A stretch of DNA of 64,000 nt from Schmidtea nova (lineage: Eukaryota). A model generated the notes under the pieces. The model did not search any database, was not told the origin of the DNA, and was given only the letters and a program-made list of their open reading frames with translations. The stretch covers positions 465,620,001 through 465,684,000 of the forward strand of contig CM097882.1 of NCBI GenBank assembly GCA_044892505.1. Direction: 5' to 3'. Each line of letters begins with the position of its first letter. The stretch's first letter is position 1. The position numbers were made by a program, and so were the translations under genes. Below are positions 38,876 through 64,000 of the stretch, one piece after another.

Positions 38876-41800
38876 CAATTCTTTACAGTAATTGATCTTA
38901 ACAAAGGATATAACCAATTTAAAATAAAAAAGGAGACAGGAGAAAAATTGCATTTTCAGATTGTAAAGGACTATATGAGTTTAATGTGCTAGCATTTGGT
39001 CTAACCGAAGCACCTGCTACGTTCCAGAGAGGTATAAATTTTGTTTTGCGTGATATACCGCATCCATTACTCTATAGCGATAATATTTTCAAATAGTTTT
39101 CAGGAGCACTTGAAAGATGTGGAAATAGAGTTTAAACTACTAATAGAAGCTAATCTCAAAATAAAACCTTCAAAATGTGAATGGGGAAAATTAGAAGTTG
39201 TTTATGTAGGAAATATTATTTCACGACGAGGGTCCAGAAAATGTAGAAAAGATTAAAAAATACCCAATGCCCAAAAATACGGATCAAGTCAGATAATTTC
39301 TGGAATTAGCTAGTTATTATAGAAAATTCATTAAAAATTTCTCGCATATCGCACAACCTTTAAATATATTGTTGAAAAAGCAGACCAAATTTAAATGGGC
39401 AACGACTCAACAAGAAGCATTTAATAAATTAAAAGAGAGTCTTATTTAACAACCAATATTAAAATGTCCAAACTTCAAAAACCCTTCATACTGATGACGG
39501 ATGCAAGCAATTTCGCATTATGAGCAGTTCTGGGACAGCAAGCAGAAGGCGAGATAGATCATGTAATCGCTTATGCCAGTCTTTCAATAAAACACAATGA
39601 AAAGAATTATTCCACTATTGAAAAAGAAACTTTAGCATTAGTATATGAGATAACTAATTTTTGACAATATTTGGTTGGGAGAAAGTTTATTGTATTTACG
39701 GATCATAACCCATTACAATGGCTAATGAAGCGTAGAGATTCAGCAAGTAAGTTAATCAGAGGGTCAATTGCGTTACAAGAATACGACTTTGAAATTAAGT
39801 ACCGGCCAGGGAAGTCGAACGCAAATGCGGATGCGATGTCGAGAATTCCTGAGGAAAATATTTTTAAAAATGAAATAAATTATGAAAATACCATATTTAT
39901 GGCAATTAAAACTACAAATAATATGAAAGAATTAGAGAAGGACCAAGAAAATGATGTTGGCGTAAATCAATTGCGTAAAAATGCCGTCAAAATAAAAAGG
40001 AAAAGTGACTGGAAGCACATTGCTCCAGAAAAATATAAATATGTTATCCACGATGGCTTGTTAAAATGTGTTAAAAATGAAAATTTATTAATTGTAGTAC
40101 CAACACAACGTCAGACAGTATTACTGTTGTTATATCATGATGGGAAATCACGAGGACATTTAACTGCTCGAAAACACTGTCAAGATTAAAACAGAAATAA
40201 TATTTGGATACGATGGAACACGATGTCAGACAGTAGTGTCTTACTTGTTAAGTGTGTCTAACCAGGAAGAAAAATAAAGGTTCCTCTGAAACCTATGCCC
40301 GTGCCACTAGCACTAATGGAAATGACAGCAATGGACATTGTCGATCCACTACCAGAAACAACTAATGTCAATAAATATATTATTGTTTTTTGTGACTATT
40401 TAACAAAATAGCCAAAAGCATATGCTATGCAAAATCAAAAAAGCGGAATCTGTGGCAAAAATATTTGTAGAAAACCTCATATTTCGGTACGGAGCACCAA
40501 GGAATTTGCTAACAGATCAAGGAACAGACTTTCAAAGCGAATTATATAAATCTATCACCGAATTATTTGGAATTCTAAAACTTAATACATCACCATATCA
40601 CACACAAACAGACGGTTTAGTCGAAAAATTCAATGGAACACTGATCAACATGATATCGTCGTATGTAAACAGAAAACAAAACGTTTAGGATTTGTTCATT
40701 ATACCATGTTTGTTTGCATATGGAAATGCAGTGAATGAAAGCACCGATGAAACACCCTTTTATCTTATGTACTTACGACGAAACAAAATGCCGATTGACT
40801 TAAATTTTCAACCGCCAATATCAAAAAAAAATGGACGTATCCGATTATAAAGTGGTAATGCAGGAAAGACTGCAATCAGTATGACCTTAAGCTGAACTTA
40901 AAATAAGGCATAACCAAGAAGCATATAAAGAATGCTACGACAAACGGGCACATGTACATGATATAAAGTTGGAGACTTGGTATACATAAATGAATCAGAG
41001 GCAGCGAAAGGACTGTCAACAAAGCTACTGCGACCATTTAAAGAGCCATATTTAGTTTGTGATGCAACAGAAACGAATTTAAAATTGCGCCCACAAAATA
41101 CTAAAAAAAAGCTGGAACGATTGCCATTCATGTAAATCGATGTATGAAAGTTACGGTGGAAGAACAGTATCCCCTGAGGTCAAAACCGAATAACGGTGAA
41201 AAAGAAAAAGTAATTTAATAAAAATTTACAAAAACACCACTCAATTAAAATTACTTGAGTAAAACGTTGCTGATTACAACAGTAATGATGATCAATGTTT
41301 TGTGTACCCATTATTAAAAAAGATCGATGTGTATTCAACATGTACCCAAATATTATGGATCTATCATTGCGAGAAATAGAAACTATTTCGAATACCACTA
41401 AAATTAAACTGTAACAAGAATATCCATGTCGCCCGTGAATTATCAATGGATTATAAATACCCTTGGGTAGTAACACAATTATAGTTTAAAGATAACCTGA
41501 CGAAACTCCATGATCTAATATGTGTCAATATATGGACAAAAAGGCTGCAAAATCGTGTATCAATTGAACCAGTATTCCATGAAATTAATGTACATTGGAA
41601 ATCTCATGAATCCCAGCAAGTAAAAACAGTCTTTCAAAATTATGCTATCGATACACTGAACAGCAGAAAACCATTTATAAATTATGTTAATTTAAAATTA
41701 TTTCAGATGTATAACATTCAAATAAAATATTTTGTAAAGTTTTTGTATGAAAGAGGAACTAAGAGTAACAATCAGTGGGTTCTAATCCATTCCAGTCAAC

Positions 41801-42722
41801 ACATGATACACTTGATCAATAAGACAAACAGAGTTATCTCTAATGTGTATAATCAGACGATAAAATGTTACCCGTCAAATGTACCCAAATAAAAGGGCTG
41901 TTCTATACTATTGTGGAAAAATACAAGCAATATTAGAAAAACAAAATGAATGACAGGTCTTATCTTTCCGACAACTACGATCAAAATCGTATTCTAAAAT
42001 TGTGCTAATAAAAATCAAATATTATCGACGAGCCAGATACTCTAATCTTTGGCAATTAACCTTAGTTGAGGACAAATTTGTGTTGGTATCATATACGGAA
42101 ATGGACAATTATTCACAGAAATTAAATCAATCAACTCGAATCACAAATAATAAAACTATATCATCCTCATTTACGGAAAATAAAATTCTACGTAACGTTG
42201 TTCATAAAAATTATCATTATAACAATATTTATCATTATTCTCATATCTTTTATCATCTACGAAATTCGAAAAACTGATAGACAGACTACGAATCAATCCG
42301 AGACTCGGATACCTTGGATCGATTATGACGAGACATTTGTATAGTGAGATACAATTATTTGCGTGCAATTACGGTATATTAATTGCGTAGCATCTAGTAA
42401 CATTTTCTTGTATCAATGTTTCATGTGAATCTGCTCTCTTCGAAATGGGAAAATTGGGAAATTGATTTAATTGGCTAATACTAAGAGTGAGGGGGTAGAA
42501 AAAAGGTCTAAAAAATTAAAAAGAGGGTATATAAGACAAACTTAAAAATCATAAAACTTAAAACAAATTTTAAAGAATTAAGAAAATTTTAAATTAAATC
42601 GGTAATTTTATATTTTTTTATTTATACCGCTACCGACTAAGACAGTATCTTTTAGGTACTCCGTCTTAGTCCTAGCGTCAAAATTAAATTAAATCAAATT
42701 TTAATTATAAACATTTAGAAAA

Positions 42723-43855
42723 ATGGAACAGCTACAATGGGCCAGGGAAACTTGCGGCAGTTACCTAAAGATGATGAAAAATCATGCCGGCCAAAGAAAA
42801 TTCCGGATGACCAACAACTTACAAATCCCAAATTACCTACGGTTGAATGATAGAAAATGAAAGTTCAATTATTCAACATCAACAGAATATCAAAATTCCA
42901 AATAACAAATGAATTAAAACTATCAAAAAAGGAAGAATACCCTATCCATGTAATCAGGGGTACGGTAGAAAAGCTAGATGAAAATGGACAAATATAGTGG
43001 GAGATCAAAAAACATTCTTCAAGCAAAATTAAGGATCCAGCAATTGGGAAAATATTACGAGTAGCAAACGAGGATGCCACAATTGTAGTGGAAACTAGAA
43101 TAAAAAACGAAATTGATGACGTACCCAGCAAGGTCCAATGTAGAAAGAAAATCATGAACTCTTAAAAATAACAAAGGAAATGTTGAAGAGAAAATTATCG
43201 TTTATTCGGAAGGAAATGGACATAGAAAAAATTCGCAGTAGGTTATTGTTCATTGATGTCGAAAATGGGAGCACTGATACATGAAAGATCATCCCCTTGG
43301 CGGTGGCCATTATGATCTATCATGGGGAAATTGTGAAAAATGTCTTCTTGACTCCTAGATGAAGACTCAAACATTTTAACTCAAACATCCATGGGATAAC
43401 GGAGGTGGCCAGCCGAAACGAAAATGACAAGTATATAGAAATGAAGGAGATTTAAAAACTGGCAATCGAAAAAATAATAGAAGGAGACGATTTACATGCA
43501 GAATTGCAATTCTTAGCAATATGGTTCAACCATCTTTTTGGCATTCAGGATCTAGCCACAGCTCAAGTTTTGCAATTGAAAGGAGTCATAAAAAGAGAAG
43601 TAACCATCAATGGGCAATGGTTCAAATTATCAATAGTATGCGACATAAAAATGCGAAAAGGAAAACATTCCGCATTGGAAGATACGGAATCAATTCGGAG
43701 AATTTACTTGGCTTTAGCAAGTCAATGGCAGGATGATGTGGAAAATGAGGAGACAGCCAGCAAAAGAAAATGTTCATTAGAAGATTACAGGAAGAGAAAA
43801 GCTCCAACAACCAGTGAGTTTATGAATGAACCAAAAGATAAAAGGAAATCTCTGT
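42723..43855 (+). pseudogene. Accessory ORF with DEDDh exonuclease domain (decayed)
   Basis: Frame from 43201: LLFIDVE (ExoI), VFLTPR*..HGIT, IIEGDDLHAEL, GIQDLA, GKHSALEDTESIRRIY (ExoIII); N-terminus NNLQIPNY resembles NQICIPND in ORF 53854-55953. Confidence 0.8.
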
Positions 43856-46742
43856 GCCGTTCGTCTGCGGATAATATGCAGTCGAACGCAGTCGTTTGAT
43901 GCCAAGCTGTTCGGATAAAGAGGTAAAAAGCTGTGATTCAAATTGCGCTCCTCTGTCGCTAATAATTTGTCTGGGAATGCCATATCGTGAAACCCATTCT
44001 GAAATGAAAGATTCAGCGACAATATTTGCTGAGACAGAACGTAGAGGAACAGCTTTACACCATCTTGTCTTCCTGTCTATAATTGTTAAAAGATACGAAA
44101 AACCATTGTTTGACCGACAAGATCAACGTGAACGGCATCAAATTAATTGCCTGTTGGAAAGTGCATGTGCGGTGGTTTAACGTGTCGAGTAATTTTGTCT
44201 GATTGGCATTTCAAACACTGACTATCTCGTCTCATAAAGGGCCAAACGACTTGGTTTCTTAGCAGCTGATAAGTGGCGGTCGAGCCAGGGTGACCTAAGT
44301 CGTGAACTGCACGGAATGCCTGTTTTCGAAGCTCGAATCCAAGAATAGGTCTAAGAGTTCCCGAAAGTGAAGAGTCTAAATCAATGCGGTCTACGTTTGA
44401 TTTATGGGGTTGAAAATATTGTAGATCAGCTTCGGTTGGTTTATTCTCGCAGAGTGGAACTAGTAAACAGGGGTTCCAAGGAGATAGCCTTGGCACTACG
44501 TTAGAGAAAATCAGCTAAAATGTTCTCTTTACCCGCTATGTGTCTGATGTCACTGGTGAACTCGGTAATGAAAGAAATTTGACGTAACTGCCTGGGAGAG
44601 TTATCCTTCATAGTTGTTAAATGAACCAACGGCTTGTGATCAGTGTAAACTGTAGTATATCTACCTCCGAGCAAATTTTTGAAATGTTTAATCGACAGAA
44701 ATATGGCTAAAAGTTCCCGAATGAACGCGGAATATTTGGTTTGAGTTTCGGTTAACTTCTTAGAAAAGAATTCACGAGGTCGAACTATACCATCTTGCAC
44801 CTGTGTTAACACAGCGCTTACTGCGACGTCGGACGCATCCGTGGTTAGACTGAAAGGCAGAGAATACTTTGGGTAAGCCAAAGTCTGAATTGATTCAAGT
44901 GCTTTTTTAGCTTCGATTTCTCTGTCCATTTTATAATATATCGCTTTGATCCCGAACTGTGCTAAGTCAAAGGAGCCAGAATATCAGATATCCTAGGTTT
45001 GAACCTGTGGCAATAATTGACTACGCCTAAAAAGCTGTGAAGCTGTGTGACAGTTTCCAGTTTAGAAAAATTTCTGATGGAATTTAAACGTTCAGTTTGT
45101 GGAGCTATTCCATCGGCGGATAAAGTGTGTCCCAGAAATTTTACACTTGATTGAAAGAATTGACATTTGGAATGATTTATCTTGAGTTGATGTTGCTCTA
45201 AGATTTTAACGAGTTTAGATAGATTCTGTTTATGTGTTTCGGCATCAGGCGATGCGACTAGGATGTCGTTGACGTAGGCTACTACATAATCTAGCCCGGA
45301 TAATATGTGATCGATATGTCGCTGGAATGTTTGTGCAGCGTTCCGTAAACCAAAAGGCATTCGCAGGAATTTGAAGAGACCTGTAGCAGTGATGACAGCT
45401 GTTTTTTGCATATCAGATGGAGCGACAGGAATTTGGTGGTATGCCTTCGTCAGATCGATCTTAGAAAATATTTTGTTACCTGTGAATCTGGCTAACGAAT
45501 CCTTTATAAGAGGCATTGAATATGAGTCGTGCTGTGTGACGGTATTTAAACGACGGTAGTCGCCACATATCCCGAAAGAAGAGTCTTTCTTAGGGACGAA
45601 ATGGATCGGAGAGGCCCAAGGTGAAGAAGATCTTTGGATCACTCCTGCTTGTAACAAATTATCATATTCTGTCTTCAGAAATGTCAAGTTTGCTCCGGAT
45701 ATCGGGCACACTCTCTCTATCTGAGTGGCGGTGAATTCAGAGTAAGGATTTGATGATAGAACCTTTGGTCTAAAGATCTTGTTGTATGAGTGAAGTTATC
45801 ATCGAAAATTCGATTAATGTTGAGTTTGTTAACAAAGTTCGTGAATAGATCGATAGAGAATGTATTGCATTCAGCAGTTTGATTAGAAGCGTCATTTAAA
45901 GACGTGGAATTAATATTGGGATCGATGACGGACAGTGAGCGTTTGTTGCAATCGATGATGATGTTAAAATTTTCAAAAAAGTCGATGCTCAGATCGATTC
46001 CCATTTCTGTAATTACACCCGATCTGACAAATGTGTGCGGAAACTCCTAACCTCTGATGATAATAACATATCCATGGAGTTTTATTACGTGTGTGGTCAC
46101 GCGACTGTGATCTCGGTCGCCTTCGGTCCGTTGATGTAGATCTTGCCTCAAGCTTCTGAACTTTTCTAGTGAGATTTTTGATTGCCGATATAAGAGGATT
46201 AAAAGAATGATCCGTAGAATTTTTAGTTTTCGTGGGTGTTGTTACTGAAATTTGGTTGCAGAAACCTGTATTTGGTTCTCGAGAAACCTCGGCTATTTTA
46301 TCAGCCATATTGGCGATATCGGCGAGTGAAGTCGAGTTGGAAACTGCTAAGATGGCTTGTGTTTGTTGAGGCAAGTCAGAAAGAAAAAAGCGACAAAGAA
46401 TAGCGTCATCTTGAGTGATGCCTTGCTGTAGCGATTCGAGGTTGTCTATGGCTTGCTTCAGGAATTCGGATGGTCGTTAGGAACTTAGGTGTTGAGTCTT
46501 GAAATATTTACAAAATATTTCTGCTTTTAGTTCCCTGAAGTTATTGATTATGGCATTTTTGAGGGAAGTAAAAGGATCAACTTCGGCAAAAAGGTTTGGT
46601 AAGAGATGCGCGAGTTAAGAAAGGAGTTCGATGGGGAGAAACGAGACAAGTTGGTCGAACTTTTGCTGTGAAGTCGCGATGTTTCTGGCGTGGAAGGATC
46701 GTTCAAAAATAAATAACCATGCGTTCGGTGATTCGTTTACAT

Positions 46743-47924: not shown

Positions 47925-49615
47925 CACCACAATGTCCTCCCAATGCTCCATCGTGGTATTGTAATAATAACGACTCTCTATACTTTTTTGGCACTAGTAT
48001 TACATTATATCTCGTTTCCACGTATTTAATTAAACCTTCCTCCAAGATAAATTTATCTTTATGTTTCTCCTAATATTTTTGAATCTCGCTTGGTATGGCT
48101 TTTGCTTCGTTGGCTTGTCTGATCATGTTGATCTCGTCATCACTTTTCTGCGCCTCTACCAAGTCAGTCAACGTATTTGCTTCTCTCGTTAACATAAAAA
48201 TTGTTCCTTCTAATCTTTCTTCCTTTACGTCATCTGCTTCCGGTTCTTGTTCCATGCGTGATAGATCGTCTGCGGTACCATTGGCTTTTCCTTTACGATG
48301 TACAATCTCAATATTATATGGCTGTAATATCAATGCCCATCTTAATTATTTCGATGCTTCATCTCTATGTTTTAACAACCATTGCAGTGGTCTATGATCG
48401 GTATAGAAAATTACCTTTATGCCCTATAGGTAATGGCTAAACTTCTCTACTACAAATAAAAGTGCTTCTAGTTCTATCACCGTATAACTTTTTTCGTGTG
48501 GCTTTAATCCACGACTAGCGTATGCTACCGCGTACTCATTGCCAATTTCATCTTTCTGTCTTAATACTGCACCTATACCTCTTGCACATGCATTAGTCAT
48601 TACCATAAATTGCCTTTTAAAATCTGGAAACCGTAAAATTGGTGGTTTACATAATGCCTCTTTCAGCTTATCAAACGCTTGCTGCTGATCCTCTCCCCAT
48701 AAAAAATTTAACTCCTTTCTTTTCTACCGTAGTTAAAGTAAAAGCGATCGCAGAAAAATTTCAAATAAATTTACTATAATATCCCGTAAACCCTAAAAAT
48801 CTCTAAATTTGTTTCTCATTCACTGGTTGTTGGAAATTCTTTACTTTATCCGTGTTAGCCGGATCTGGTCTTACGCAATCGTGTGATATTACATGCCCTA
48901 CGCAAATCACTTCCGACTCTGCCAACTTGCATTTGCTTTATTTTACTTTTAAATTTGCCATGATTAATCTTTTAAAAATATCCTCAAAATGTTCTTAGTG
49001 CTTATCTAAATCTTCCGAGAAGATGATAATGTCGTCTATATACACCATTGCATGATGTGCATCCATCAGCATGATATTCATAGCCCTCTGAAAAGTTGGA
49101 AGTGTTCCTTTTAGTCCAAACGGCATCACTACATATTCGAAATGGTCACTACTTGTTGAAAATCCAGTCATCGAAATTGAGTCTTCGCTCATGTTTATTT
49201 GATAAAACCCCTTCTGTGCATCCATCACAGTAAACAATTTTTCATTTTATTGTATATTTAATCTAACAAAGGTAGCGGGTGATTATGACTTACAGTCTAC
49301 TCATTTAATTTCCTATAGTTGTTACATGACCTAACTGAATCATCTCTCTTAGCTTCAACCACCAAAGGTGAGGAATATGGAGATTTACTTGGACTGATTA
49401 TATTATACTTTTGCATTAATTTAATTTGTTTATCTACGAACCCTTGTATACTTTTAGGTATTCTATATGGGCGAATCTTTATTGGTTTAATTTCTGTTAA
49501 TTTAATCTCATGTTCTAAGCTATTAACTTGTCCTAGGTCATATTCGTGTTTTGCAAAAACTTAGTCATATTTTCGTAACAATTGATTAACCCTAATATTC
49601 TCTTTTCTAGTTAAA
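47925..49615 (-). pseudogene. pol: Gypsy pol fragment (RT, RH, start of IN), related to the env-class elements
   Basis: VFAKHEYDLG, PIKIRPY, MPFGLKGTLPTFQR, YIDDIII, MTNACARG, HRKGKANG, YHDGALGGH; many disablements. Confidence 0.85.
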
Positions 49616-49805
49616 ACTAAATAAAACTAAATAAAAGCTTAAATAAAACGTTATTGCATTGTTATACCGTATAGTATACAACTGTAAGTTTTAACTAGCG
49701 CTTTATTCTTAGATTACTTTTTAAAATGTATTTAGTTATCTTTCATTTTTTACAAAAACCCTGTTAAAGGTGAAAACAAAATAGAAATTGGTGTTAAACA
49801 ATTCA

Positions 49806-52560
49806 TAATAAACCCCAGAGTTTGACCAGGTTCTCGTCTGACACACATTCCCGACTGCGCTCTTTGTTGTTGGTATCTATGGCCGAGTGTCTTCCACGAA
49901 GCAATCACAAATCAACATATCTTGTGGGATCAAAACGTGTGAGTCCGGGTCCAACTAATCTTATAAATAAAAGCGAAGATACAGTTGTTGTCTTCAATGA
50001 AGCTCATGACGGGGTGATGATAAGATTCATCTGTAAAAACCCTCGCTCAGCTTCACTTGAAGAAATTGGGATTGTACTGGGGGCAATTTTCAAAGGAAAA
50101 AGTTTATCAGGAACACTTTTTTCGGTGATATATTCACGAAATCCACGAATCATTATTCTTTCGTTTAACTATAATCTTGTTGACAAGTTCCTTATTTCTG
50201 CTTCGCCAAACGTCAAGTGCGTATCAATATTGTTGGGCCAATGTTTTAGATCAAGCACTCGAGCCGAGTATGCCAAACTAGCATCTTCACTGGACAGCAA
50301 TCTTTGTTCTATTGATTCTCTTAGCTTTTTGAAACGCTTTCACATCAATTGGTGGATCATTTTTACTTTCTTTTTTGTGAAGTGAAACTCCTCTGAAAAA
50401 GTTATTATCTGCAGCAGTGGTCGCAATTTTATAATAAGGGCCTGGAATGATTTGTCGTTCTTCAAAAACCTGTATAAGAGCCTTGATCTTTTAATCTGCT
50501 TTGTAAAGGTTCATGTCGCGCTTTTGCAAATCTAAACTTAACTCTGACAGCTCTTGTAGGGCATCGCATATCAATCCGAGGTCTAATACGAATTTAGTAG
50601 AAGTAATCTTCCGCTGTAAACCTTCGTATGTGCATTGATCTTTTTTGTCTCAGGTTGGATAATGTTTTGTTTCGTCAAAATGCTTAACCAAAACTTCGTA
50701 ATCTTCCCAAACTGCTAAAACTAAACGGAAACTGGATACCACCCATATCGTGCTCAACATCCTCCCAATTTTTAACAACTCAGTTTGTAACAAATTAGCA
50801 CATATTTGCAATTCTCTTGAATTTTTTGGCAAAGGACACACAGTTTATCAATGAATGCTTTCAATCGGTTGATCCCCGAAACTTGTTTTATGGTATCATC
50901 AACGGAGAGTTCCAGTCGGTGATTTGTACAATGCCAAACCAGAACAGATGGAAACTTTTCTTTCAGCAATTTCTTGACTCCAGTTTTGCACCCCAACATC
51001 ACAACTGCTCCATCACATGCAAGATAAATCAAATTTCTTTTAAGAAATTCTTCTGTTATCCCATAGGAATGAAGGCAGTTTAGTAATAAATCAAAAATTC
51101 CCGTTGTGGTTACACTTTCGAGTTCTACCAAATCCAAGAATAAATTCACTGGTGAGTTCATTCCACTGTCCGCAAGACAAACACGAATGTACACAATTAA
51201 AGTAGATTTCTGGCTAGGCGTAGTTGATTCATCGATAATCAATGAAATTTTATTGTCCCACCTTATTATTTCTTTGATCAATTTTATTTTCATTTCAGAA
51301 CTTATGTGATTCACTAAATTGATACATGCATTGGTTGAATGGACTATATGGATCACCTCAATTCCATTCAGTTCTTGCAAATCAATTTCAGATTCAAAAT
51401 TATGAAACGATTTTTTTTCTTTGGCCACTTTATATGCCGTACGAAAAATCTTTGCAGTTACGACTTTTTCAGGAGATAATGCCTTTAAAAACAGGTTCTC
51501 GATAGGTGCCGTATCGGCTTCGGCTAGTATCTTAAGTGCAGCTTTATGTGTCGCAGTTTCCTTATGATCGAACAATTTTTTCCGTAATGACATAAGCTGA
51601 TGTTTTCAATTAATATTGAAGTAGGTTATTTGATTGTTAGACCATTCTTTAGATATCTTCATTCAAATCTTTGCCTCGACTCTGAGGTTACCAACTTTTC
51701 GGCACGGAAAACAACCAAAGTTTTTATCATGGATAGATAGCCAGTTATACTTTGTACAGAACTCGTTTTTTTGATCCAAAGTCCAGCATGCATGCCAGTC
51801 AGCATCATCAAGTTGTAATTGCTCAATAGCATCAGATGATCCAAGAACGCTATTTGAATGCATTATTTCCAATGGGTCCGTTATGGTTTCTTCTGTTACA
51901 CCAACTTCTGCCCTTATTTCTTCGCACAATCTGTTTTTTTATTTACTGGAAATTCGTTTGATTGCGAAGCAGAAAAGAAATCAAAAATCTTCATTTTCAA
52001 GTGAGATAAATTAATTATATACCAAGTAATCAATTATAAATTTTAATTTTGTAAGTTTTAATTTTTTAACTTGTTTTTAATCTTCTATGCATAACGTTTA
52101 AAAACACGTGGCCGGAAATGAGCTATCAATTAATGACGTCTTATTAAGAGTGTGCTTATAAATTGTGGCTGTCTGGATTCGTTTTGGTGGCAGGTGCTCG
52201 TTTCTATGTGGAAATATGAAATAAATGTACGCCACATAGGAACGGCATGCAAGCACTCTGCACAGCGTTAATAACAAACATTACCTTATATGAGTTATAC
52301 ATAATTGTGCACTAATAGGCACAATGCGAATATAATTATTATATTACGTTAAAACATTTTTGCTATTCGTATTTAAGTGCTAATTTATAGATAAAAATGT
52401 AAAATAAAACATTCATATTAATAGTATAATAAAAAATAATTATAATTTAAATCACTTAAAAGTTACTATTAATTATATTTTATTTTTTATAAAATGAAAA
52501 AGGTGCCGGTACGCCGTACCGGCGCATACCGTCACAAAAAAAAAAAAAACAATAGCCGGA
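49806..52560 (-). mobile_element. hAT transposon (ZNF862-like transposase), decayed
   Basis: IIDESTT, LACDGAVVMLG, WHCTNHRLEL, EGFSQMNLI, FIRLVGP; terminal block aaggtgccggtacgccgtaccggc..cacaaaaaaa at about 52495-52560. Confidence 0.88.
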
Positions 52561-53853: not shown

Positions 53854-55953
53854 TTAAATATCAAATGGATGTTGATATCCTGGTTGGTGCTTGGATTGAT
53901 TGTGCACTGGGTACTGATTGATATTGGGTTCTGTTTCTTTTTTAATATTGGTTGCATCGACAGGCTCTGCATAAATATTCACTCTGTATTTGTTGCCCCC
54001 CACACTATAATTTTCTGATAGGAGGAATGTATTGATGGGCTTACCTTCATCATCCAACATTCCTCCCCGGGCCGTCAAAGTAATGTCCTCATTTCCTTTG
54101 TCACACAATATTAAATCAATTCTTTTCTCTTTTATTTGAATTGTTGTTTTTCGAAATCCATTTTTTATCGCAAGGTTTATCGTCTCCTCGTGCTCAATTT
54201 GTCTTCCAAAATGAGTGCAGAGATCTTTTTCTGAGACATACTTTTTGTCTTTGTCTATTATGAAGTCTGATTCTTCTGGTTCTGTCCAGTCGGCTAACAT
54301 TTCAACTTTTGGTTCTGGTCCGATATCCTCTTCCATTATGTTGTATTTACTACTTGTTGATGGTTCTTCACTATCTTCTTCCATTTTGATGTCGTTACTG
54401 CTGGTTGAAGGTTCTTCTATGTTTTCATCTGCTGAGAAATATTCATCGTCTATATCACATTCGTCCATTCTTTCATATAGAATATTTTGAATTTTGGGTT
54501 CTGCTTTGATTTCCCTAGTTGGAGCGATAAGTGGTATTTCTTCTTTTATGATCATGAGTTCATCGTCGTCACTGTCCATGAGTTCTTCCATGAATGACTT
54601 TTTTGGTTTGTAATGATTGGTTTTTGTTAATTCCCCATGGGACGGCTCCATGCCTTCTCCATCTTCATATTTACTTTCTATCTCACCTTCTGCTTCGCTC
54701 TCTGTTTCGTTTTCGAATATTGCTTCTAGTTGTTCTTCTCCATTTACTTGTTTCCTTTTAAGAAGTGTTGCGGAATCCCATTTGACAACTTCTTCCCATT
54801 TATTTTCTGTGATATCGTAGATCACTTTTAATAACATTGTGGTGATCTTTGTTGAGAATGGTTCTGGTTGTCTCAATATATCATTTAACTTTTTATCTTT
54901 ATGCCAACTTTTATGGTAATTGATTACCTGGTAAGCCAAATTTGATATTTTTATTTTTGGTGGGGCCACGTTTTTTACAAAAGAACACATAAATCGATCC
55001 TGTGCCATTTCTCTTATGCCCATAATGTTGTCCAGATCTATCGTCAATAGTTTTAACTTATCTATGATGTTGAATCCAACTATGATCTTTCCATAGAGAA
55101 TGTTTCGAATTTCATTTAAGGCTTTATATTCGTCTTCATTTCCAATTATGTTTTCTTTTGTAGCTTTAGTTTTTTCCGTGTAGAATTTTTCTACTTTCGT
55201 TCTTGGGGTGATGAATTTGTTATACAGAATTGCTCCTTTTCTGCTTCTGATACAAATTTCCACTGGTCTGAGATTTTTGTTTATATCTTGAATTACTTTT
55301 ATATCCACCATTACAGTTAATGAATGCCTTTCTTCTGTCGTTAACTCTTGATTCGTGAATGATATCTTCTGATTGATCATATCTTCATTTATTTGTAGGA
55401 TTGAATGTATTGGGTTTAATTTTATGAACGGATTTGGGATTGTCGGGATATATAGCACTTCGATTGCTATCACACATGGTAGGTTGTTCATCTGCACTGT
55501 CAACTCATTGAAATCGTTTGACATGCTTCTGTCTTTTCTTATTAACTTGATAACTGCTGAACAGTTGCTTGTGACAATTAACGGGATTTTATTTTGACAT
55601 ATTGCAACTTCTGTTTTTGTCATGTGGAATATTAGTCTGTGAGGGATTCTCTGGTTTTTTGCAACTTCTTTGTCGACGTTTTGGTATTTGTCGAAGGTTC
55701 CAATAAGCTCCCTGAGTTTCACTCTTCGGGCCTCATTGAATTTTATCAGATGCATTTCCCGTTCTTCTATTTCGACTTTCATGTCGTTTGGGATACATAT
55801 TTGATTTGGGAAACTGCGAATTGTAATTGGGGTTCCATCCGTACATATCTTGTTCTGTAGATTTTTGTAAAAACTCATGTTTAGTTTGTTTATAAAACAA
55901 GTATATTTCTGGTAGGTTCTTGGTTGATTGAAATGAGGTTGATTTTGATTCAT
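53854..55953 (-). CDS. 699-aa accessory protein with REX4/ISG20-like (DEDDh-fold) pseudo-exonuclease and acidic region
   Basis: Residues about 212-385: VMVDIK..RPVEICIRSRKGAILYNKFITPRTKVEKFYTEKT..IRNILYGKIIVGFNIIDKLKLL..IREMA; catalytic residues mostly lost. Confidence 0.75.
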   Translation of the reverse strand: MNQNQPHFNQPRTYQKYTCFINKLNMSFYKNLQNKICTDGTPITIRSFPNQICIPNDMKVEIEEREMHLIKFNEARRVKLRELIGTFDKYQNVDKEVAKNQRIPHRLIFHMTKTEVAICQNKIPLIVTSNCSAVIKLIRKDRSMSNDFNELTVQMNNLPCVIAIEVLYIPTIPNPFIKLNPIHSILQINEDMINQKISFTNQELTTEERHSLTVMVDIKVIQDINKNLRPVEICIRSRKGAILYNKFITPRTKVEKFYTEKTKATKENIIGNEDEYKALNEIRNILYGKIIVGFNIIDKLKLLTIDLDNIMGIREMAQDRFMCSFVKNVAPPKIKISNLAYQVINYHKSWHKDKKLNDILRQPEPFSTKITTMLLKVIYDITENKWEEVVKWDSATLLKRKQVNGEEQLEAIFENETESEAEGEIESKYEDGEGMEPSHGELTKTNHYKPKKSFMEELMDSDDDELMIIKEEIPLIAPTREIKAEPKIQNILYERMDECDIDDEYFSADENIEEPSTSSNDIKMEEDSEEPSTSSKYNIMEEDIGPEPKVEMLADWTEPEESDFIIDKDKKYVSEKDLCTHFGRQIEHEETINLAIKNGFRKTTIQIKEKRIDLILCDKGNEDITLTARGGMLDDEGKPINTFLLSENYSVGGNKYRVNIYAEPVDATNIKKETEPNINQYPVHNQSKHQPGYQHPFDI

Positions 55954-56415
55954 CTTTGTTTTTGATTGATATCGAATTGATTTCTTGAGATATTGATTTG
56001 AGAGATGATTAATAGGGTTTTGACAGTTTAACAGAGATATAATTGAATATATTGAGATATATGGGTAATTGTCGTAACGATTCGATTGGTTTATAGAATT
56101 GACGAGATTGATTGGGTATTTTGTATGGAGATGATTGGTAGGGTTTTCTGATTGTTTGTTGTGATAGTTTAAAAAGAGATGATTGTATTTATTGAGATTT
56201 TTGAATGGTTGTCACAATGATTTGATTGATGTGTAGAATTCACGAGATTGATTGGGTTTTCGGAGTTTGTTGGAACTTGCTTTGTTTTGCTCGTGTAATC
56301 TTTTCTAAAAATAAAGGATAAAGTTTTTTGTTTAAGACGTATTGTCGGTTTAACCTTATACGCTATATAAATACGAATATATATGATTTTAATTATTATT
56401 ACTGACAAAAACTTA

Positions 56416-59400
56416 TTATACCAATGTGGATTTTGTATATTCACCTGGTATATATTTGCCCAAATGGAAATGCCCTGGTACATTTCTGACCAGTCGGCTC
56501 CGATACCGCTGCCTTTTCCATTTGTACTTTTTGTAAATTTGTACGCTAGTTATTAAAGCTAAAACTGCTAATGCTATTATTGATGTTGTGATGACATAAT
56601 AAGGCCAATGTGGCTTTTTATCCTCTTTACGAAATGCTTGTAGTTCCTCTAAGTTATGTATCACTATTGGTCTTCCTTGCCTTATTTTGATAGGTTCTTG
56701 TTTTTGTTTTTTGGCATTGTATTGTTTTTGGAATTTGGCTATTCCAGTGCTTGTTGGTATTTCGTTTGTAAGTGGTGTGGTATTTAGTATATTATCTGAT
56801 GTCGTTGTTGTGCTTTTTATTCTATCGAGTGTTTTTGTTATGTTATGGTTTTTTGTTATATTCTTGGGTAATTGTTCTGTTTTTATTTTTTTGCATCTCC
56901 ATGTTGTTGTATCTGTGTTTCTCTGTATGCAGATTTTGTATATTGTATTAGGTGTTAGTTTTGTGAAATTAATATAGTTTCCTCTTTCGATTTCGTTGGT
57001 TATTCTGTCGTCTTTTCCTTTTATCATCTTTGGGTTTTTCCCATTCGTTGTTTGCATGTATAAATCAATTACTCCTCTATTTATGATAAATGCTCTAACT
57101 TCGTTTGTTGATATTTTTATTAATACTTTGTCAAATTCTATTGTTTCGGTTGAGCCAACAAATGTTATGATTGTTAAGAAGATAGCCGATATTATTAGTT
57201 TGTTATGAGATCTTAGATTATACTTGTGGGGTTTATCTATCGTGACCTCGGCTTCCGCCAACTTGCATCTGTTGACATGTACTACTATTGGATCCTCGTT
57301 TTTATGCTTTTGTAAGTGTAAATTCTCATTTATTACTTTTACTACCTCATATGGACCTTTATATGGTCTTGCTAGTTTTGTTGTCTTTCCCTTTCCTACT
57401 TGTGGTGACATAAGTCTAACCTTATCACCTACTTTAAAGTTGTGTGGTTTACTATTTTTGTCGTAGTCGGCTTTGTACTGTTCTTGTCTATATTTGACTT
57501 TTAGATTGGCTACTTTATACACTTCTTGCAGTTTTTCCTGCATTAGTGTGACATAATCTGGTGCATCTAAATATTGTGATACTCGAGGTTCAAATATTGT
57601 ATCTATTGGTGTTGCTGGTTCTCTTAAAAACATTAAATAATACGGTGAATACCCTGTTGTTTCGTTTGGAGTGATATTATGAATGTATGTGCATTGACTT
57701 ATGTATTCGTCCCAATCATTTTGATTTTTTCCTACAAAAACAGCTAGTCTGCTTAGTAATGTCCCATTAAATCTTTCTACTAGTCCATCAGTTTGAGGGT
57801 GATACGCTGTTGTGTTGATCTTTTGCATGTTAAAAATATTAGCTACTCGTTTTATTAATTCACTAGTAAAATTTGTTCCTTTATCTGTTAATAATCTTTT
57901 GGGTGTGCCTATCTTGAAAATAATTTTTTCTATAAGCAATTTAGCAACTGTTTCTGCTGTTTCGTCTTTTGTTGGAAATGCTTCTGCCCATCTAGTAAAA
58001 TAATCACTAAATACTAGTATATGTTTATTCCCATTAATTGTAGTAGGTAATTTACATAGAAAATCCATTGCACATAGTTCCATTGGTGATGTCGTTGCTG
58101 GAATGGGATGTAACGGCGCTTTTGTTTTTGTACCTGTATTTTTTCTTGTTGCACATATTGTACACGCGTTACACCATCTCTTAACATCTTTCTTTAATTC
58201 TTCCCAGTAATATTTTTGTAATAATCTACTTGCTGTTTTTCTAGATGATAAGTGACCTCCTAATGCTCCATCGTGATATTGTAGTAGGAGTATTTGTCTT
58301 AATTTCTGAGGTACTACTATTAGTTGCTTACCATTGAAATCTTCTATTACTACTAATTTCTTTGATATTTTATACTTTGAATTGTTTTCTTTTCTGATTT
58401 CATTTTTTATTTTACTGATCTCTGGGTCTTTCATCTGTTCCTCATATATATCGATTGGTTTTTCTGCTACTAGTGCAAATATTTCAAGTGCTCCTAATTC
58501 TGGTATTCTTGATAGTGCATCTGCGTTTTTATTTATTCTACCTGGTTTATATATAATTTTTAGGTGCATGTCTTGTATTTTCATTGCCCATTTAAGTAAT
58601 CTACTTGATGTATCTTTATGTTTCCATAAGCCTTCTAATGGTTTATGGTCAGTTCTTATTATCACTTCAGTCCCATATATGTATGGTTTGAATTGTTTTA
58701 GGGCGAATACTATTGCGTAACATTCTTTTTCTATTGTTGAATACCTCAGCTGTGCTCCTTTTAATGTTTTACTGGCATATGCTATTACGTAATCTTTCCC
58801 TTTTTCTTCTTCTTGGCCTAAGACTGCTCCTACGGCTTTCCCGCTGGCATCCGTCATTACTATAAACTGTTTTTCAAAATCTGGGTATCTTAACACTGGT
58901 GCTGTTATCAATCTTTCTTTTAGTTTATTGAATGCTTCTTGATGTTCCTTTGTCCACTTCTTTTGTATCTTGTTAACTTTGCTGTTCATTTCTTGTACTA
59001 TTAACACATTTTTGCATTCTCCTTTTGTTCTAATTCCCTTTGTCAGTTCTATTATCGGTGATGCTATCTTTGCATAATCTTGTATGAATTTACGATAGTA
59101 CCCTGTTAGACCTAAAAACCCTTGTACTTGTTGTACTGTTTTTGGTATTGGGAATTTCTTTACAACTTCTATTTTTTCTGGATTTGGTTTTATCCCTTCT
59201 ACTGTAACTATATGCCCTAGAAATAACGCCGAAGGTTCTGCCCATTTACACTTAGTTGGTTTAATTTTAATTTTTGCTTTTCTTAGTCTCTCGAGTACAT
59301 TTGTTATATCTTTTAAGTGTTCCTCAAATGTTTTTGATGATATTAGTATATCATCCATGTAAACTGCGCAATGTTGTACATTTACTAATATTGTGTTCAT

Positions 59401-60705
59401 TAGGCGCTGAAATGTAGCTGGTGCGTTAGTTAACCCGAAAGGTAATCGTGTATACTCATATAAACCATCCTCGATAACAAATGCTGTTTTTTCCGCATCC
59501 CCTTCCTCCATTTGAATTTGCATATATCCCTTATTTGCGTCAATAACTGAAAAATACTTAGCATCCCTAAGTTTATCGTATTGCTCTTGTGCTTTTGGGA
59601 ATGGGTATGAATCTTTTACTGTTACATCATTTAATTTACGATAGTCAATGCACATTCTTATTTCTCCGTCTTTCTTTTTAACGGGTACAATGGGTGATGC
59701 CCACTGTGAAAAACTCTGTTTTATTACACCTGCATCGTTTAGTTCTTTGATTTGTCGTTTTATTTCCTCTCTTAACTTGTATGGTACGCTGTATGGTCTT
59801 TGTTTTATTGGTCTCGCATTACCTGTATCTATTACATGTTTGATTATATCGGTATCCCCTAGATCAAATTCGTGTTTTGCAAAAACATCACTATATTTAT
59901 CTATCAATGTTTGTAGTTGTGCTTGTTGTGTTATTGTTAAGTATTCATTATTAATTTTCACTTTGTCATATGATTTTATATTATTTATCTTACTAGGTTC
60001 GACTACTCCCTTGCCGTTATTATTCATCACGCTTATCTCACTGACTTCGTACGTTTTTTCTAATTCACCTTTGAATAATTTTCCCAATTTCGTACCTTTG
60101 TGTATTTTAACATTACTTTTTTCATAATTTGCTATTCTCAATGGTATTATTCCCTTTCTCGGAATTACGCATTCATTGATTAGCATTATATTCTGATTTT
60201 GTATAATTGCCGTTTCTGGCTCAAAAATAAAAGTGTCCTCACTTTTGATGTTAACTTTTAAGGGAATTATATGATCGCATTCATATTCCAATTCAAATGC
60301 TTCTAATGCAACAACTTCTGTGAACTTGGATTTATGTTTAATTGCTTTTCTCTTTATCGTATTATCTGTTAAATCTATAATGCAATTTTCTAACTTGTTG
60401 AGTATATCGATTCCCAATATACATATGCTATTACATTCTTGCACCACTTTAAATATGTGGTTTATTACATGTTCTGGTGTTTCGACAATTAGTTCTATGT
60501 CTCCCTTTAGTGGAATACGATGTGCTGATAACGATACTACTTTATCCGTTGTGCTCATAATATTTCTTTTTTGATCATCTGTCAGTTGATCTTCTCTAAT
60601 TAAGGATGTTGCTTCTCCTGTATCTACTAATGCATTTATGATTATATTGTTTATAATTATTCTAAGTCTTGGTCTTGCTTCGTTTGCTGCATCTAATCGT
60701 TCCAT
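56416..60705 (-). CDS. pol: Pol polyprotein PR-RT-RNase H-IN plus C-terminal type I membrane protein
   Basis: ALVDTGEA, QWASPIV, CIDYRKLN, LPFGLTNAPATFQR, YMDDILI, MTDASG, HDGALGGH..CxxC, AMDF, TDKGTNF, QTDGLVER, YKGPY; last 261 aa carry two hydrophobic segments. Confidence 0.95.
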   Translation of the reverse strand: MERLDAANEARPRLRIIINNIIINALVDTGEATSLIREDQLTDDQKRNIMSTTDKVVSLSAHRIPLKGDIELIVETPEHVINHIFKVVQECNSICILGIDILNKLENCIIDLTDNTIKRKAIKHKSKFTEVVALEAFELEYECDHIIPLKVNIKSEDTFIFEPETAIIQNQNIMLINECVIPRKGIIPLRIANYEKSNVKIHKGTKLGKLFKGELEKTYEVSEISVMNNNGKGVVEPSKINNIKSYDKVKINNEYLTITQQAQLQTLIDKYSDVFAKHEFDLGDTDIIKHVIDTGNARPIKQRPYSVPYKLREEIKRQIKELNDAGVIKQSFSQWASPIVPVKKKDGEIRMCIDYRKLNDVTVKDSYPFPKAQEQYDKLRDAKYFSVIDANKGYMQIQMEEGDAEKTAFVIEDGLYEYTRLPFGLTNAPATFQRLMNTILVNVQHCAVYMDDILISSKTFEEHLKDITNVLERLRKAKIKIKPTKCKWAEPSALFLGHIVTVEGIKPNPEKIEVVKKFPIPKTVQQVQGFLGLTGYYRKFIQDYAKIASPIIELTKGIRTKGECKNVLIVQEMNSKVNKIQKKWTKEHQEAFNKLKERLITAPVLRYPDFEKQFIVMTDASGKAVGAVLGQEEEKGKDYVIAYASKTLKGAQLRYSTIEKECYAIVFALKQFKPYIYGTEVIIRTDHKPLEGLWKHKDTSSRLLKWAMKIQDMHLKIIYKPGRINKNADALSRIPELGALEIFALVAEKPIDIYEEQMKDPEISKIKNEIRKENNSKYKISKKLVVIEDFNGKQLIVVPQKLRQILLLQYHDGALGGHLSSRKTASRLLQKYYWEELKKDVKRWCNACTICATRKNTGTKTKAPLHPIPATTSPMELCAMDFLCKLPTTINGNKHILVFSDYFTRWAEAFPTKDETAETVAKLLIEKIIFKIGTPKRLLTDKGTNFTSELIKRVANIFNMQKINTTAYHPQTDGLVERFNGTLLSRLAVFVGKNQNDWDEYISQCTYIHNITPNETTGYSPYYLMFLREPATPIDTIFEPRVSQYLDAPDYVTLMQEKLQEVYKVANLKVKYRQEQYKADYDKNSKPHNFKVGDKVRLMSPQVGKGKTTKLARPYKGPYEVVKVINENLHLQKHKNEDPIVVHVNRCKLAEAEVTIDKPHKYNLRSHNKLIISAIFLTIITFVGSTETIEFDKVLIKISTNEVRAFIINRGVIDLYMQTTNGKNPKMIKGKDDRITNEIERGNYINFTKLTPNTIYKICIQRNTDTTTWRCKKIKTEQLPKNITKNHNITKTLDRIKSTTTTSDNILNTTPLTNEIPTSTGIAKFQKQYNAKKQKQEPIKIRQGRPIVIHNLEELQAFRKEDKKPHWPYYVITTSIIALAVLALITSVQIYKKYKWKRQRYRSRLVRNVPGHFHLGKYIPGEYTKSTLV

Positions 60706-60981: not shown

Positions 60982-62763
60982 TTATTTAGCTATAAATGGG
61001 CACAAACATGCTAATAATTTATATGAATTTCCAAATACTTGTTTTAGCTGTCTCAGTGATACTAGAGAAGAACATATCATTTTTAGTAATGCAACCGTAT
61101 AATATATACCTAAGATTGTAGAAAACATGTTTCCAAGGACTACAAAGTATCCCCATATGCTATATAGTACTTTATATGCTACTTTTTTGAAGTATTCTTT
61201 TGATAATAACACATCAAAGTTGTAATTTCCTCCGTAACTTCCTTCGATAACTCTGTTAACCATTATTGAAAGTACTCTTTCTTTTTCGTTTGGAAATAGC
61301 ATGTGTTTTCTTGCACTTTCTATAGCTTCTCTCGTATATATACCATTACTGTCCATATCGTTGATTTCTTTAAACTCTAATCTTTTTTCTAGCTCTATGA
61401 GTTCTAATTTGAATGGTTTCATTGCCTCTTTTCTATCTGACATAGATATCCACATTTCGTCATTTATTTTGTATAATGGGTCTAATAGGTTAGTGCATTT
61501 TTCTATTTTTCTCGGTATATATGTTTTTTCTGTTAATATTCTAGTAATTGGTTGAAGGTATACCCTTTCTCCTTTATATATTACCGGTAATTCATTAGTG
61601 CACTGATTATTTGTTGCTAACGATACACTAACAGGTTTACATTGAAATGTCTGTATCACTTCTCCTACTATCCTTGCAAATGTTCCTTCTTCTGAGAAGA
61701 TTATTGGTGCCATTAAATCTGGGTTTGTTACCGCCACTGCCATTTTTGTCCTCAATATTTCTCTGTTGAGTTTGCAATCGCTCATAATTGTTGATTGATA
61801 TACTTTGTCTAATTGTACTAGTTGGTTATGATAGAAAAAATCGATTTTATTGTTGAAGTATGATGCAAGTTTGACGTCGAATTTATTTACTTTTTGTTTT
61901 GCATCTTTGACTTCCTCTTTGCTTATGTATATCCCTTCATAATTAGTTTGTATTATTTCCTTACCACATTTTACACTTTTCCTTTTACTAACAAACCTCA
62001 TTGCTTCGTTTTCAGATTCTGACATAAATATTGTTGGTGTATCTTTTTCTTGTACAATTGTTGTTTTCCTTTTTTGATCTCTCACCCTTTTTGAGTCTAC
62101 TTCTGTGAACTGTTTTCCTTTGATTTCCCTAAATTTTAATGATTTTAATTTTGTTAACTGACAATCGTATTTATCTATTTTATATATTAGCATTGATTCT
62201 CCTGTATCGCAATAAGATTCTTCTAATGTACAAAATTTGTATATCATCATTTTCTTTGAGCTGCTGTCGAATGATGCTTTGAACTTTCTCAGTTCTACCA
62301 TGTAGTGTCTCCTTACTACAACATTACTCAGTTTTTCGCCCCATATTGTATATTCTCCTCCTTCACAATATCCTCCTTTTGATGTCCATCCCACGACATT
62401 TATATCTTGTCTCATTTTTGCTCCTATCCTTGCTTCTAGTTCTATTCCTTTATGACCGCTATATTTTACTTTCTTTGTTTTAAATGCATATTCACACTCT
62501 ATTGGCGACAATATTACTGCTTCGGGTGTCCACGTAGGTTTTAACACTGTTCTTGCCCCAACATGACATATATATGCTTCCTCCTGATACTTTACTATGC
62601 ACTCTTTAGCCTCTGTATGAATAAAGTCTGATTCTTGATAAACATGGAATATTTGAGGCTCTGACATGATTAATTTAGTTGGATTTGCTTCAGGGCAATT
62701 TTCAACATCCAACAGTGTGTATTTTTGTCCCCACTTTGGATTTTGACAATCATATGCTACCAT
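60982..62763 (-). CDS. env: Envelope glycoprotein, chuvirus/Jingchuvirales-like (class III fusion candidate)
   Basis: N-terminal AYDC, LLDV..C, Cys-rich ectodomain, GEVIQTFQC..V..CTNELPV..G..YLQPITRIL, C-terminal hydrophobic helices. Confidence 0.8.
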   Translation of the reverse strand: MVAYDCQNPKWGQKYTLLDVENCPEANPTKLIMSEPQIFHVYQESDFIHTEAKECIVKYQEEAYICHVGARTVLKPTWTPEAVILSPIECEYAFKTKKVKYSGHKGIELEARIGAKMRQDINVVGWTSKGGYCEGGEYTIWGEKLSNVVVRRHYMVELRKFKASFDSSSKKMMIYKFCTLEESYCDTGESMLIYKIDKYDCQLTKLKSLKFREIKGKQFTEVDSKRVRDQKRKTTIVQEKDTPTIFMSESENEAMRFVSKRKSVKCGKEIIQTNYEGIYISKEEVKDAKQKVNKFDVKLASYFNNKIDFFYHNQLVQLDKVYQSTIMSDCKLNREILRTKMAVAVTNPDLMAPIIFSEEGTFARIVGEVIQTFQCKPVSVSLATNNQCTNELPVIYKGERVYLQPITRILTEKTYIPRKIEKCTNLLDPLYKINDEMWISMSDRKEAMKPFKLELIELEKRLEFKEINDMDSNGIYTREAIESARKHMLFPNEKERVLSIMVNRVIEGSYGGNYNFDVLLSKEYFKKVAYKVLYSIWGYFVVLGNMFSTILGIYYTVALLKMICSSLVSLRQLKQVFGNSYKLLACLCPFIAK

Positions 62764-63920
62764 TGCATTGCCCCCTTGATTAAATCTAATAACAAAGTGA
62801 TTATGACTATTACTATGGAGGTTATCGATTTACTCTCTGTCTTTGGTTTTACTGTTGCTCTCTTTATTAATTGTTTTATTACATTATCTGTATCACTCTC
62901 TTTATTCGTCGTATCTTTATCATATAATACTTTCCATCCTCCTTTCTTTTTTATCCATGGTATTGCCTCTACTTTCAATCTTTTAAACATCATTGTTGCT
63001 ACTTTTTCTAATTGCTCTTTTGGATTTTCCTTTATGAGCTTTTTATATCTTGCGGCCAAGTATGCCATGGCCGTTATTATTTTATCTTTATCTATCCCTG
63101 TATTAAACAGGATTTTTAACACTGTTTTTTCATTTGCTTCCTCTGTAGCTAGTTCTTTAGTATCCTTTTTAATTAACATCATCCTTTCAGTTATATTTTC
63201 AATAAGTACTGTTGGCTTTGTTTCTGGAAATAGCTTAATATTCATTGCTTTTATTACTTCTTTTATTTTGTTTACGTCATTATTATCGTCTTGATACTCT
63301 GGTTGTTCATGTTTATGTTGATTTGCAATCTCTCTTAATCGTTCTGCTGTCTTCCTATTCTCCGATTTTTCTATTATTTCTGATTTTCGAGGTCTTCCTC
63401 TACCTCGTTTTGATGTTTCTGCATCTTTTGTTTTTGCTTCCTCAGCTATTCTTTCTATTGTTTCTTGTAAGTTACTATACTTTTCATCTATAGGTTTAAA
63501 TAAAATTTCTTCATCCATTACTGATTTCTTTGTTTCGCTAGGTGATTTATCCCATAGCCTAAATAATCTATCAAAATCGTTTTCTTCATTTATACTCAGC
63601 TCAACCGACGGTACTGGCGTCACTATTTCATCGATCATTTGTTTTTCTACTGTGGCTACCACAATATTATCACTTACTGGGTTTATCCCATAATCGATTA
63701 AGTACTCATCACTTAATAATTCTATTCCGTTAAAATATAATTTTATTACATCTTTCTCTCCTATGGTTCCTGGCCATTTGGCTCTTACCATTCGTTTTAA
63801 TTTGCTCACTTTAGTGCAAGGATGCATCTTTTGTTTAATACTAAAAAAATAATTATCATTTGATTCAATCGTTACATTTAGTGTTTCATGCAATTTTTCA
63901 TTTTTTCTTATATTCTCCAT
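62757..63920 (-). CDS. Ubl, AT-hook, Bcl-2-like domain and hydrophobic tail (probably the N-terminal part of the polyprotein)
   Basis: IKLYFNGIELLSDEYLIDYGI (Ubl), KRGRGRPRK, LFNTGIDKDKII...PWIKKKGGW (BH1/BH2 spacing), SITSIVIVIITLLLDL. Confidence 0.75.
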   Translation of the reverse strand: MENIRKNEKLHETLNVTIESNDNYFFSIKQKMHPCTKVSKLKRMVRAKWPGTIGEKDVIKLYFNGIELLSDEYLIDYGINPVSDNIVVATVEKQMIDEIVTPVPSVELSINEENDFDRLFRLWDKSPSETKKSVMDEEILFKPIDEKYSNLQETIERIAEEAKTKDAETSKRGRGRPRKSEIIEKSENRKTAERLREIANQHKHEQPEYQDDNNDVNKIKEVIKAMNIKLFPETKPTVLIENITERMMLIKKDTKELATEEANEKTVLKILFNTGIDKDKIITAMAYLAARYKKLIKENPKEQLEKVATMMFKRLKVEAIPWIKKKGGWKVLYDKDTTNKESDTDNVIKQLIKRATVKPKTESKSITSIVIVIITLLLDLIKGAMQW

Positions 63921-64000
63921 AACATTTCAACATCTCTTTTATTTCTATTTCTAATTCAAATACTCTCGTTACATTTTGTCTCTTTACCATCATTGGTAAT

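Follow-up and report, generated by a model that had tools for sequence, protein, structure and literature searches.

Viral mimics of Bcl-2 are a textbook case of host-gene capture by large DNA viruses. The locus described here raises the question whether a retroelement of the long terminal repeat (LTR) type can carry such a gene as well. We analysed a stretch of 64,000 nucleotides (nt) from Schmidtea nova (assembly GCA_044892505.1, contig CM097882.1, positions 465,620,001 to 465,684,000 of the forward strand), here called the window, in which an initial annotation made from the sequence alone had pointed to a Bcl-2-like domain encoded by a retrotransposon. The analysis supported this reading. 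The peptide in question was found in ORF1, an open reading frame (ORF) of 387 amino acids (aa) on the minus strand (62757..63920) that has no internal stops, and the span originally assigned to the domain, 62919-63275, corresponds to residues 216-334. ORF1 is more plausibly than otherwise, at a probability of roughly 0.6, the gene of an accessory protein of an envelope-bearing Ty3/gypsy-type element, encoding a diverged member of the Bcl-2 family that acts as a pro-survival mimic. The Bcl-2-like domain was probably captured long ago from a host.

Based on Pfam and PDB searches, a structural model and conservation, the domain was placed at 62916..63287 of the minus strand (ORF1 residues ~212-335). 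PF00452 (Bcl-2) was the only Pfam family matched by ORF1 (E 2.2e-6, 28.6 bits; residues 263-329, profile positions 33-100), and a core of 71 residues searched alone gave an E value of 4e-7 (31.0 bits). The HMMER comparison with this family (E 2e-6 to 4e-7, no competing family) gave scores 0.4-2.8 bits under the cut-off. In a phmmer search of the PDB, 55 of the 56 matches were chains of Bcl-xL or Bcl-2. The alignment to these chains ran without a gap over 70-74 residues, as the initial annotation had claimed for human BCL2, and its details were reproduced too: NWGR of Bcl-xL lies over DKDK, P-W-I...G-G-W is matched, and the first Trp of BH2 (BH, Bcl-2 homology) is the 52nd residue counted from the Leu of BH1. 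The BH1-like stretch covers ORF1 residues 271-287 (63060-63110) and the BH2-like stretch residues 321-333 (62922-62960).

No match to the whole of ORF1 was obtained in a word-indexed protein search. A HMMER scan of 1.84 billion representative proteins yielded three relatives: P0002, which matches the N-terminal half of ORF1 (E 4.7e-6), P0003, similar to the Bcl-2-like half plus the tail (E 9.1e-6), and P0004, similar to the middle together with the Bcl-2-like part (E 6.3e-5). Each of them comes from a short metagenome contig; on that of P0002, another Bcl-2-like ORF follows closely downstream. A domain-profile search, which matched no cellular Bcl-2 proteins, brought in a further decayed copy, P0005. 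Two scans of metagenome contigs with domain alignments gave pattern matches, none of which was confirmed. When four cores were aligned, PF00452 was the best family for each of them; P0003 taken alone matched it with an E value of 7.7e-5, and P0004 alone matched it as well. A profile built from the four sequences was then compared to the PDB, and chains of the Bcl-2 family (A1/Bfl-1, Bcl-xL, Bcl-w) made up 59 of the 60 matches listed, with E values from 1e-3; the odd one, at rank 58, was a designed helical repeat. The PDB E value was about 80-fold better with the profile than with the single sequence. A profile search of the six-frame translation found no second Bcl-2-like domain in the window. 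The Bcl-2 signal in ORF1 is weak yet specific.

Conservation was compared column by column among sequences that are 23-31% identical to that of the window. The W..GGW of BH2 (ORF1 residues 322-329) was invariant in all four sequences reaching BH2, and the conservation of GGW that the initial annotation had looked for in other copies was seen in all 4 relatives extending that far. The proline between the two long helices was likewise kept in 4/4 sequences that reach it. In BH1, the N, W and G positions of NWGR are replaced, and not by the same residues in every member. At the fourth position, all five members have K or R, and the next three positions are I (5/5), I or V (5/5) and T (5/5). In cellular Bcl-2 proteins, this basic residue pairs with an aspartate of BH3. 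A BH3 had also been proposed for ORF1 (residues 240-247); it fits the spacing loosely in the window alone, and we rejected it since the pattern is not conserved in the relatives. A recognisable BH3 is also missing from many viral Bcl-2 homologues (PMC11209288). The ratio of nonsynonymous to synonymous substitution rates (dN/dS) was 0.13-0.24 among L002, L003 and L007, which form the closer trio, with dS partly saturated in two of the pairs.

The initial annotation had tied its proposal to a helical bundle, and such a bundle of Bcl-2 type was predicted by AlphaFold and matched by Foldseek, at low model confidence. The model of residues 204-354, made without templates from an alignment of the family's own four sequences, has seven helices (predicted local distance difference test, pLDDT, 58.7; predicted template modelling score, pTM, 0.52). 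Its 50 best PDB matches in Foldseek all belong to the Bcl-2 family, including sponge BHP2, BAK, Bcl-2, Bcl-xL and BOK, with a probability of 1.00 (0.99 for one) and template modelling (TM) scores of 0.40-0.65 over 129-165 columns for the 151-residue model. In a library of viral structures, the best matches were the Bcl-2 homologues of herpes-, irido-, pox-, asfar- and adenoviruses, none of them from a reverse-transcribing virus. A model of the whole of ORF1 was too poor (pLDDT 44.6) for a fold search of the helical half, and the domain model is too rough for reading the groove. That this part of ORF1 is homologous to Bcl-2 proteins and shares their fold is, in our judgement, very likely.

The module in its retroelement

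The Bcl-2-like domain is preceded in ORF1 by two further parts and followed by a third. Residues ~16-92 (63645..63875, minus strand) are probably a ubiquitin-like (beta-grasp) domain, for which the evidence is weak and consistent. In Pfam this stretch matched Rad60-SLD (E 0.003) and ubiquitin (E 0.012-0.045), and in a profile search of the PDB most of its matches were ubiquitin-like domains (E 0.1-1). AlphaFold gave a beta-beta-alpha-beta-beta arrangement (pLDDT 55-72), which Foldseek matched to ubiquitin with a probability of 0.97 and a TM score of 0.59. An AT-hook-like basic motif with a G-R-P core was read from the sequence at residues 171-179 (63384..63410, minus strand); core and basic flanks are kept in four of five members (the window, L001, L002 and L003). 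Finally, a hydrophobic segment starts about 35 residues after the Bcl-2-like domain with its BH2. It spans residues 366-381 (62778..62825, minus strand), six residues before the stop, and no 15-residue stretch of ORF1 is more hydrophobic (mean Kyte-Doolittle value 2.69).

ORF1 is the first of five ORFs that follow each other on the minus strand, the others being ORF2, pol, an ORF of 104 aa and one of 699 aa. ORF2 (60982..62763, 593 aa) encodes a fusion glycoprotein and overlaps ORF1 by 7 nt in a different frame. The pol ORF (56416..60705, 1429 aa) is uninterrupted and encodes protease, reverse transcriptase, RNase H and integrase; RVP, RVT_1, RT_RNaseH_2, Integrase_H2C2 and rve were all matched in this one ORF, and this domain order is that of the Ty3/gypsy-type set. 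Elements of the Troyka, Loki and Odin types were considered as the home of the element and rejected, as pol carries the gypsy domain set. No interruption was seen in ORF1, ORF2, pol or the 699-aa ORF. On the other side of ORF1, the end of an upstream ORF (63901..64000, minus strand) stops just within ORF1 in another frame and leaves the window at its edge. It is probably the gag side of the element, and it ends in residues similar to those ahead of the ubiquitin-like domain in the relative L003. A CCHC gag of this element is not seen within the window, from which the upstream ORF runs out; one is found in P0004 in the frame of the module. No long direct repeat was detected in 40000-64000, and the 5′ end of the element lies past base 64000.

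The arrangement in the relatives links the module to the same kind of element. In P0004, one frame of 1130 aa begins with a CCHC gag, continues with a ubiquitin-like domain, then an AT-hook and the Bcl-2-like domain, and passes through a hydrophobic segment into the first part of a PF24664 glycoprotein. In both L001 and L002, the same module stands directly upstream of the same glycoprotein, and in L001 it stands downstream of gag. With glycoprotein and pol on the strand of ORF1 and a relative that has gag in frame, the retroelement context claimed for the domain is real. The four contigs of the relatives each have at least one in-frame stop or frame change in or near the module or the glycoprotein and are decayed copies. 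Counted against their continuous arrangement, ORF1 of the window differs in frame from both the upstream ORF and ORF2, which makes one change on each side and two in all. These frame changes may be mutations, assembly errors or a means of expression.

ORF2 matched PF24664, the fusion glycoprotein of the mononegavirus/chuvirus type, with an E value of 3.3e-81. A membrane segment lies towards its C-terminus, near residue 550, and it shares 40.7% identity with the glycoprotein portion of P0004. ORF2 shows no hydrophobic stretch in its first 44 residues and lacks a signal peptide of its own; it starts where the mature glycoprotein begins in the relatives. In P0003 and P0004, the segment equivalent to the hydrophobic segment of ORF1 shares its reading frame with the glycoprotein that follows it, and the PF24664 profile aligns to this segment with its first positions. 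Because the match starts on this segment in the relatives and ORF2 lacks a signal, the segment appears to be the signal of the glycoprotein, with the module set before it. The suggestion that one segment could serve both as envelope signal and as tail anchor gained support from the same two observations. The only database relative of ORF2 was P0001 (21% identity), and the gene table of the three contigs of the latter (L004-L006), which belong to an exogenous mononegavirus, includes an L polymerase gene, which fits an origin of the glycoprotein in an RNA virus. ORF2 represents a complete-looking PF24664 glycoprotein located upstream of pol in a gypsy-type element.

Function of the module and alternative explanations

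How might such a protein be made and used? The hydrophobic segment would insert into the membrane of the endoplasmic reticulum, and the ectodomain of the glycoprotein would be cut off and freed on the lumenal side. The module of ubiquitin-like domain, AT-hook and Bcl-2-like domain would then stay in the cytosol, anchored by its C-terminus in the topology of cellular Bcl-2 proteins. ORF1 of the window ends a few residues past the segment and would, even alone, still yield a tail-anchored protein. As a pro-survival mimic, the module could protect the cell from death during expression of the element, like the homologues of DNA viruses, and by this analogy a pro-survival activity is the most likely one. 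The retained basic residue and BH2 would favour a working groove, while the lost Trp and Gly together with the missing BH3 would leave room for another use of the fold.

Several points weigh against this reading. The PF00452 scores of 28.6 and 31.0 bits are just below the curated gathering cut-off of 31.4, and the single-sequence PDB E value is weak (~0.09). The domain model has low confidence, its Foldseek E values are 6e-3 to 2e-2, and root mean square deviations are mostly 6-10 Å and reach 13.5 Å. As NWGR has lost its Trp and Gly and a conserved BH3 is missing, function through a BH3-binding groove is uncertain. The family has only five known members, and the contigs of four of these are metagenomic, short and decayed. 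LTRs and the 5′ end lie outside the window, so that the limits of the element are not fixed, and ORF1 is out of frame with both neighbours; the copy in the window may not make the fusion seen in the relatives.

The alternative that survives best is that the Bcl-2 fold has been put to another use, as a signalling inhibitor like A52/B14, as a regulator of autophagy or of calcium in the endoplasmic reticulum, or simply as a folded leader in the cytosol that brings glycoprotein and capsid together in assembly. The loss of the NWGR Trp and Gly in all members and the lack of a conserved BH3 agree with this, as does the position of the domain within a larger module with ubiquitin-like domain and AT-hook that shares its frame with gag in P0004. 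Non-apoptotic Bcl-2 folds are also known from poxviruses (PMC2494871). However, the basic position that would pair with the BH3 aspartate is kept as K/R in 5/5 members, BH2 is fully kept, and the closest matches in both sequence and fold are true apoptosis regulators and not the poxvirus A52/B14 group. We regard another use as possible but clearly less probable than a pro-survival role.

BAK, BOK and the sponge homologue among the best fold matches raise the thought of a Bak/Bax-like killer, which would permeabilise membranes and promote the death of the cell expressing it. Fold matches at such model quality cannot, however, tell the subfamilies apart, and the best profile matches were to the pro-survival proteins A1, Bcl-xL and Bcl-w. 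Multi-domain killers of the Bcl-2 family need their BH3, and no conserved BH3 was seen here. Moreover, the known viral homologues that were matched by fold are all survival factors or inhibitors (PMC11209288). A killer thus appears quite improbable.

A chance likeness, in which two short motifs are matched by accident because an AT-rich genome encodes K/I-rich helices, would account for scores below the Pfam cut-off and single-sequence PDB E values near 0.1. It would not account for four further copies, diverged to 23-31% identity, that match the same family and keep the same motif columns, nor for the roughly 80-fold gain in E value with the profile, of which 59 of 60 matches listed were Bcl-2 family. 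As the fold search agrees across the whole domain and not over the motifs alone, and dN/dS is well under 1, we consider chance very unlikely. Least credible of all is that ORF1 belongs to the host as an exon, or to another element as a fragment, and adjoins the retroelement by accident, which the unfixed element limits would allow, since ORF1 overlaps both neighbouring ORFs and the synteny test in the relatives placed the module directly before the same glycoprotein in L001 and L002 and after gag in L001.

A pro-survival mimic in an accessory gene of the element therefore remains our preferred reading. It is finely balanced whether the broader claim also holds, namely that this is the first Bcl-2 homologue in a reverse-transcribing element, old, selected across diverged gypsy-type lineages and used as the cytosolic leader of an envelope captured from a negative-strand RNA virus.

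Other features of the element and the window

Downstream of pol lies the 699-aa ORF (53854..55953, minus strand), which contains a segment resembling the exonuclease ISG20 (54985-55242). Residues 238-323 matched PDB entry 1wlj (ISG20, a 3′-5′ exonuclease) with an E value of 2.2e-4, and no Pfam family reached E 0.1 with this ORF. This ORF, too, may have been taken from a host, as a second accessory gene of the element. A tblastn comparison revealed a second, diverged element of the same family on the plus strand (36449-43770), truncated at its 5′ end. This copy consists of the C-terminal part of the glycoprotein (36449-37157, 39% identity), pieces of pol (37848-41182) and a relative of the 699-aa ORF (43153-43770, 24% identity); a profile search found no Bcl-2-like part in it. 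Glycoprotein, pol and an ORF of the 699-aa type follow in the same order in both elements of the window. Because of this shared gene order, the 699-aa ORF seems to be part of the family, and it probably belongs to the element.

The small ORF of 104 aa (56169..56483, minus strand) overlaps the end of pol and gave no significant family match. It is partly overlapped by a direct repeat of 93 nt (56028-56120 and 56168-56260; 76% identity, spacing 140), which follows the end of pol and precedes the 699-aa ORF.

The G+C content of the window is about 32%. Decayed remains of retroelements and transposases crowd it, giving it the look of a repeat-rich region in an animal genome. Decayed pol and gag fragments of other families were found at 24700-27767 and 3223-4062 on the plus strand and at 44143-46374 and 47932-49623 on the minus strand. 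An IS1595/ISXO2-like DDE transposase domain is present in two fragments, 12016-12372 (plus strand) and 18534-19013 (minus strand). In addition, downstream of the element, a G+C-rich palindrome (52502-52530) stands beside a long run of T (minus strand) within a stretch that is AT-rich apart from it. The palindrome may be the end of another mobile element. An Rfam search of the window gave no match.

Comparison with known systems

ORF1 can be aligned from BH1 to BH2 without gaps to cellular members of the Bcl-2 family (Bcl-xL, Bcl-2, A1/Bfl-1, Bcl-w, BAK, BOK and sponge BHP2). It shares with them the W..GGW, the basic residue, the hydrophobic core of BH1, a predicted helical bundle and a hydrophobic C-terminal segment about 35 residues past BH2. 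In contrast to these proteins, ORF1 has replaced the Trp and Gly of NWGR and has neither a conserved BH3 nor a recognisable BH4. Its domain is encoded by a retroelement and comes after a ubiquitin-like domain and an AT-hook in one fused protein, and a single segment is both its anchor and the signal for a viral glycoprotein.

The best matches among viral structures were the homologues of double-stranded DNA (dsDNA) viruses (vBcl-2, BHRF1 and BALF1 of gammaherpesviruses, A179L of asfarvirus, those of irido- and poxviruses, and E1B 19K of adenovirus). As in those viruses, a diverged Bcl-2 fold with weak BH motifs is found in a mobile parasite. The carrier of ORF1 is, however, a reverse-transcribing gypsy-type element, and its domain is part of a multi-domain protein that is continuous with the envelope precursor in the relatives. 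A review of viral Bcl-2 proteins covers dsDNA viruses only (PMC11209288), and our literature searches on retrotransposons, Metaviridae and errantiviruses found no report of a Bcl-2 homologue.

A leader of this kind has parallels in the foamy virus Env leader peptide and the arenavirus stable signal peptide, envelope leaders that stay in the membrane. As with those, we propose that the N-terminal piece of an envelope precursor, ending in the signal, is kept as an anchored cytosolic protein with a function of its own. The ORF1 leader, if cleaved as proposed, would differ in its length of about 380 residues and in its folded, host-derived domains.

Capture of a chuvirus-type glycoprotein has been described for the mosquito Pao element 'Anakin', whereas for gypsy elements only fragmentary associations with such glycoproteins have been reported, chiefly in Hymenoptera and Coleoptera (PMC7642597, PMC10084718). 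The element described here likewise has a PF24664-type glycoprotein of a negative-strand RNA virus within an LTR-type element. Unlike 'Anakin', it has a gypsy-type pol, the glycoprotein lies upstream of pol, and the Bcl-2-like module precedes the glycoprotein. The element thus departs from the described cases on two counts: it is of gypsy type with a captured glycoprotein that is complete and precedes pol, and a Bcl-2-like module stands before that glycoprotein. It would add a clear gypsy-type case of the capture of a mononegavirus- or chuvirus-like envelope, of which earlier surveys found no complete example.

If our reading of ORF1 is true, control of cell death can pay even for a retroelement that has only about 10 kb and hardly any space for genes, and the leader of an envelope precursor would be a new route to a tail-anchored protein. 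A small retroelement would then carry a host-derived accessory set (Bcl-2, ubiquitin-like and ISG20-like) that is otherwise a feature of large DNA viruses.

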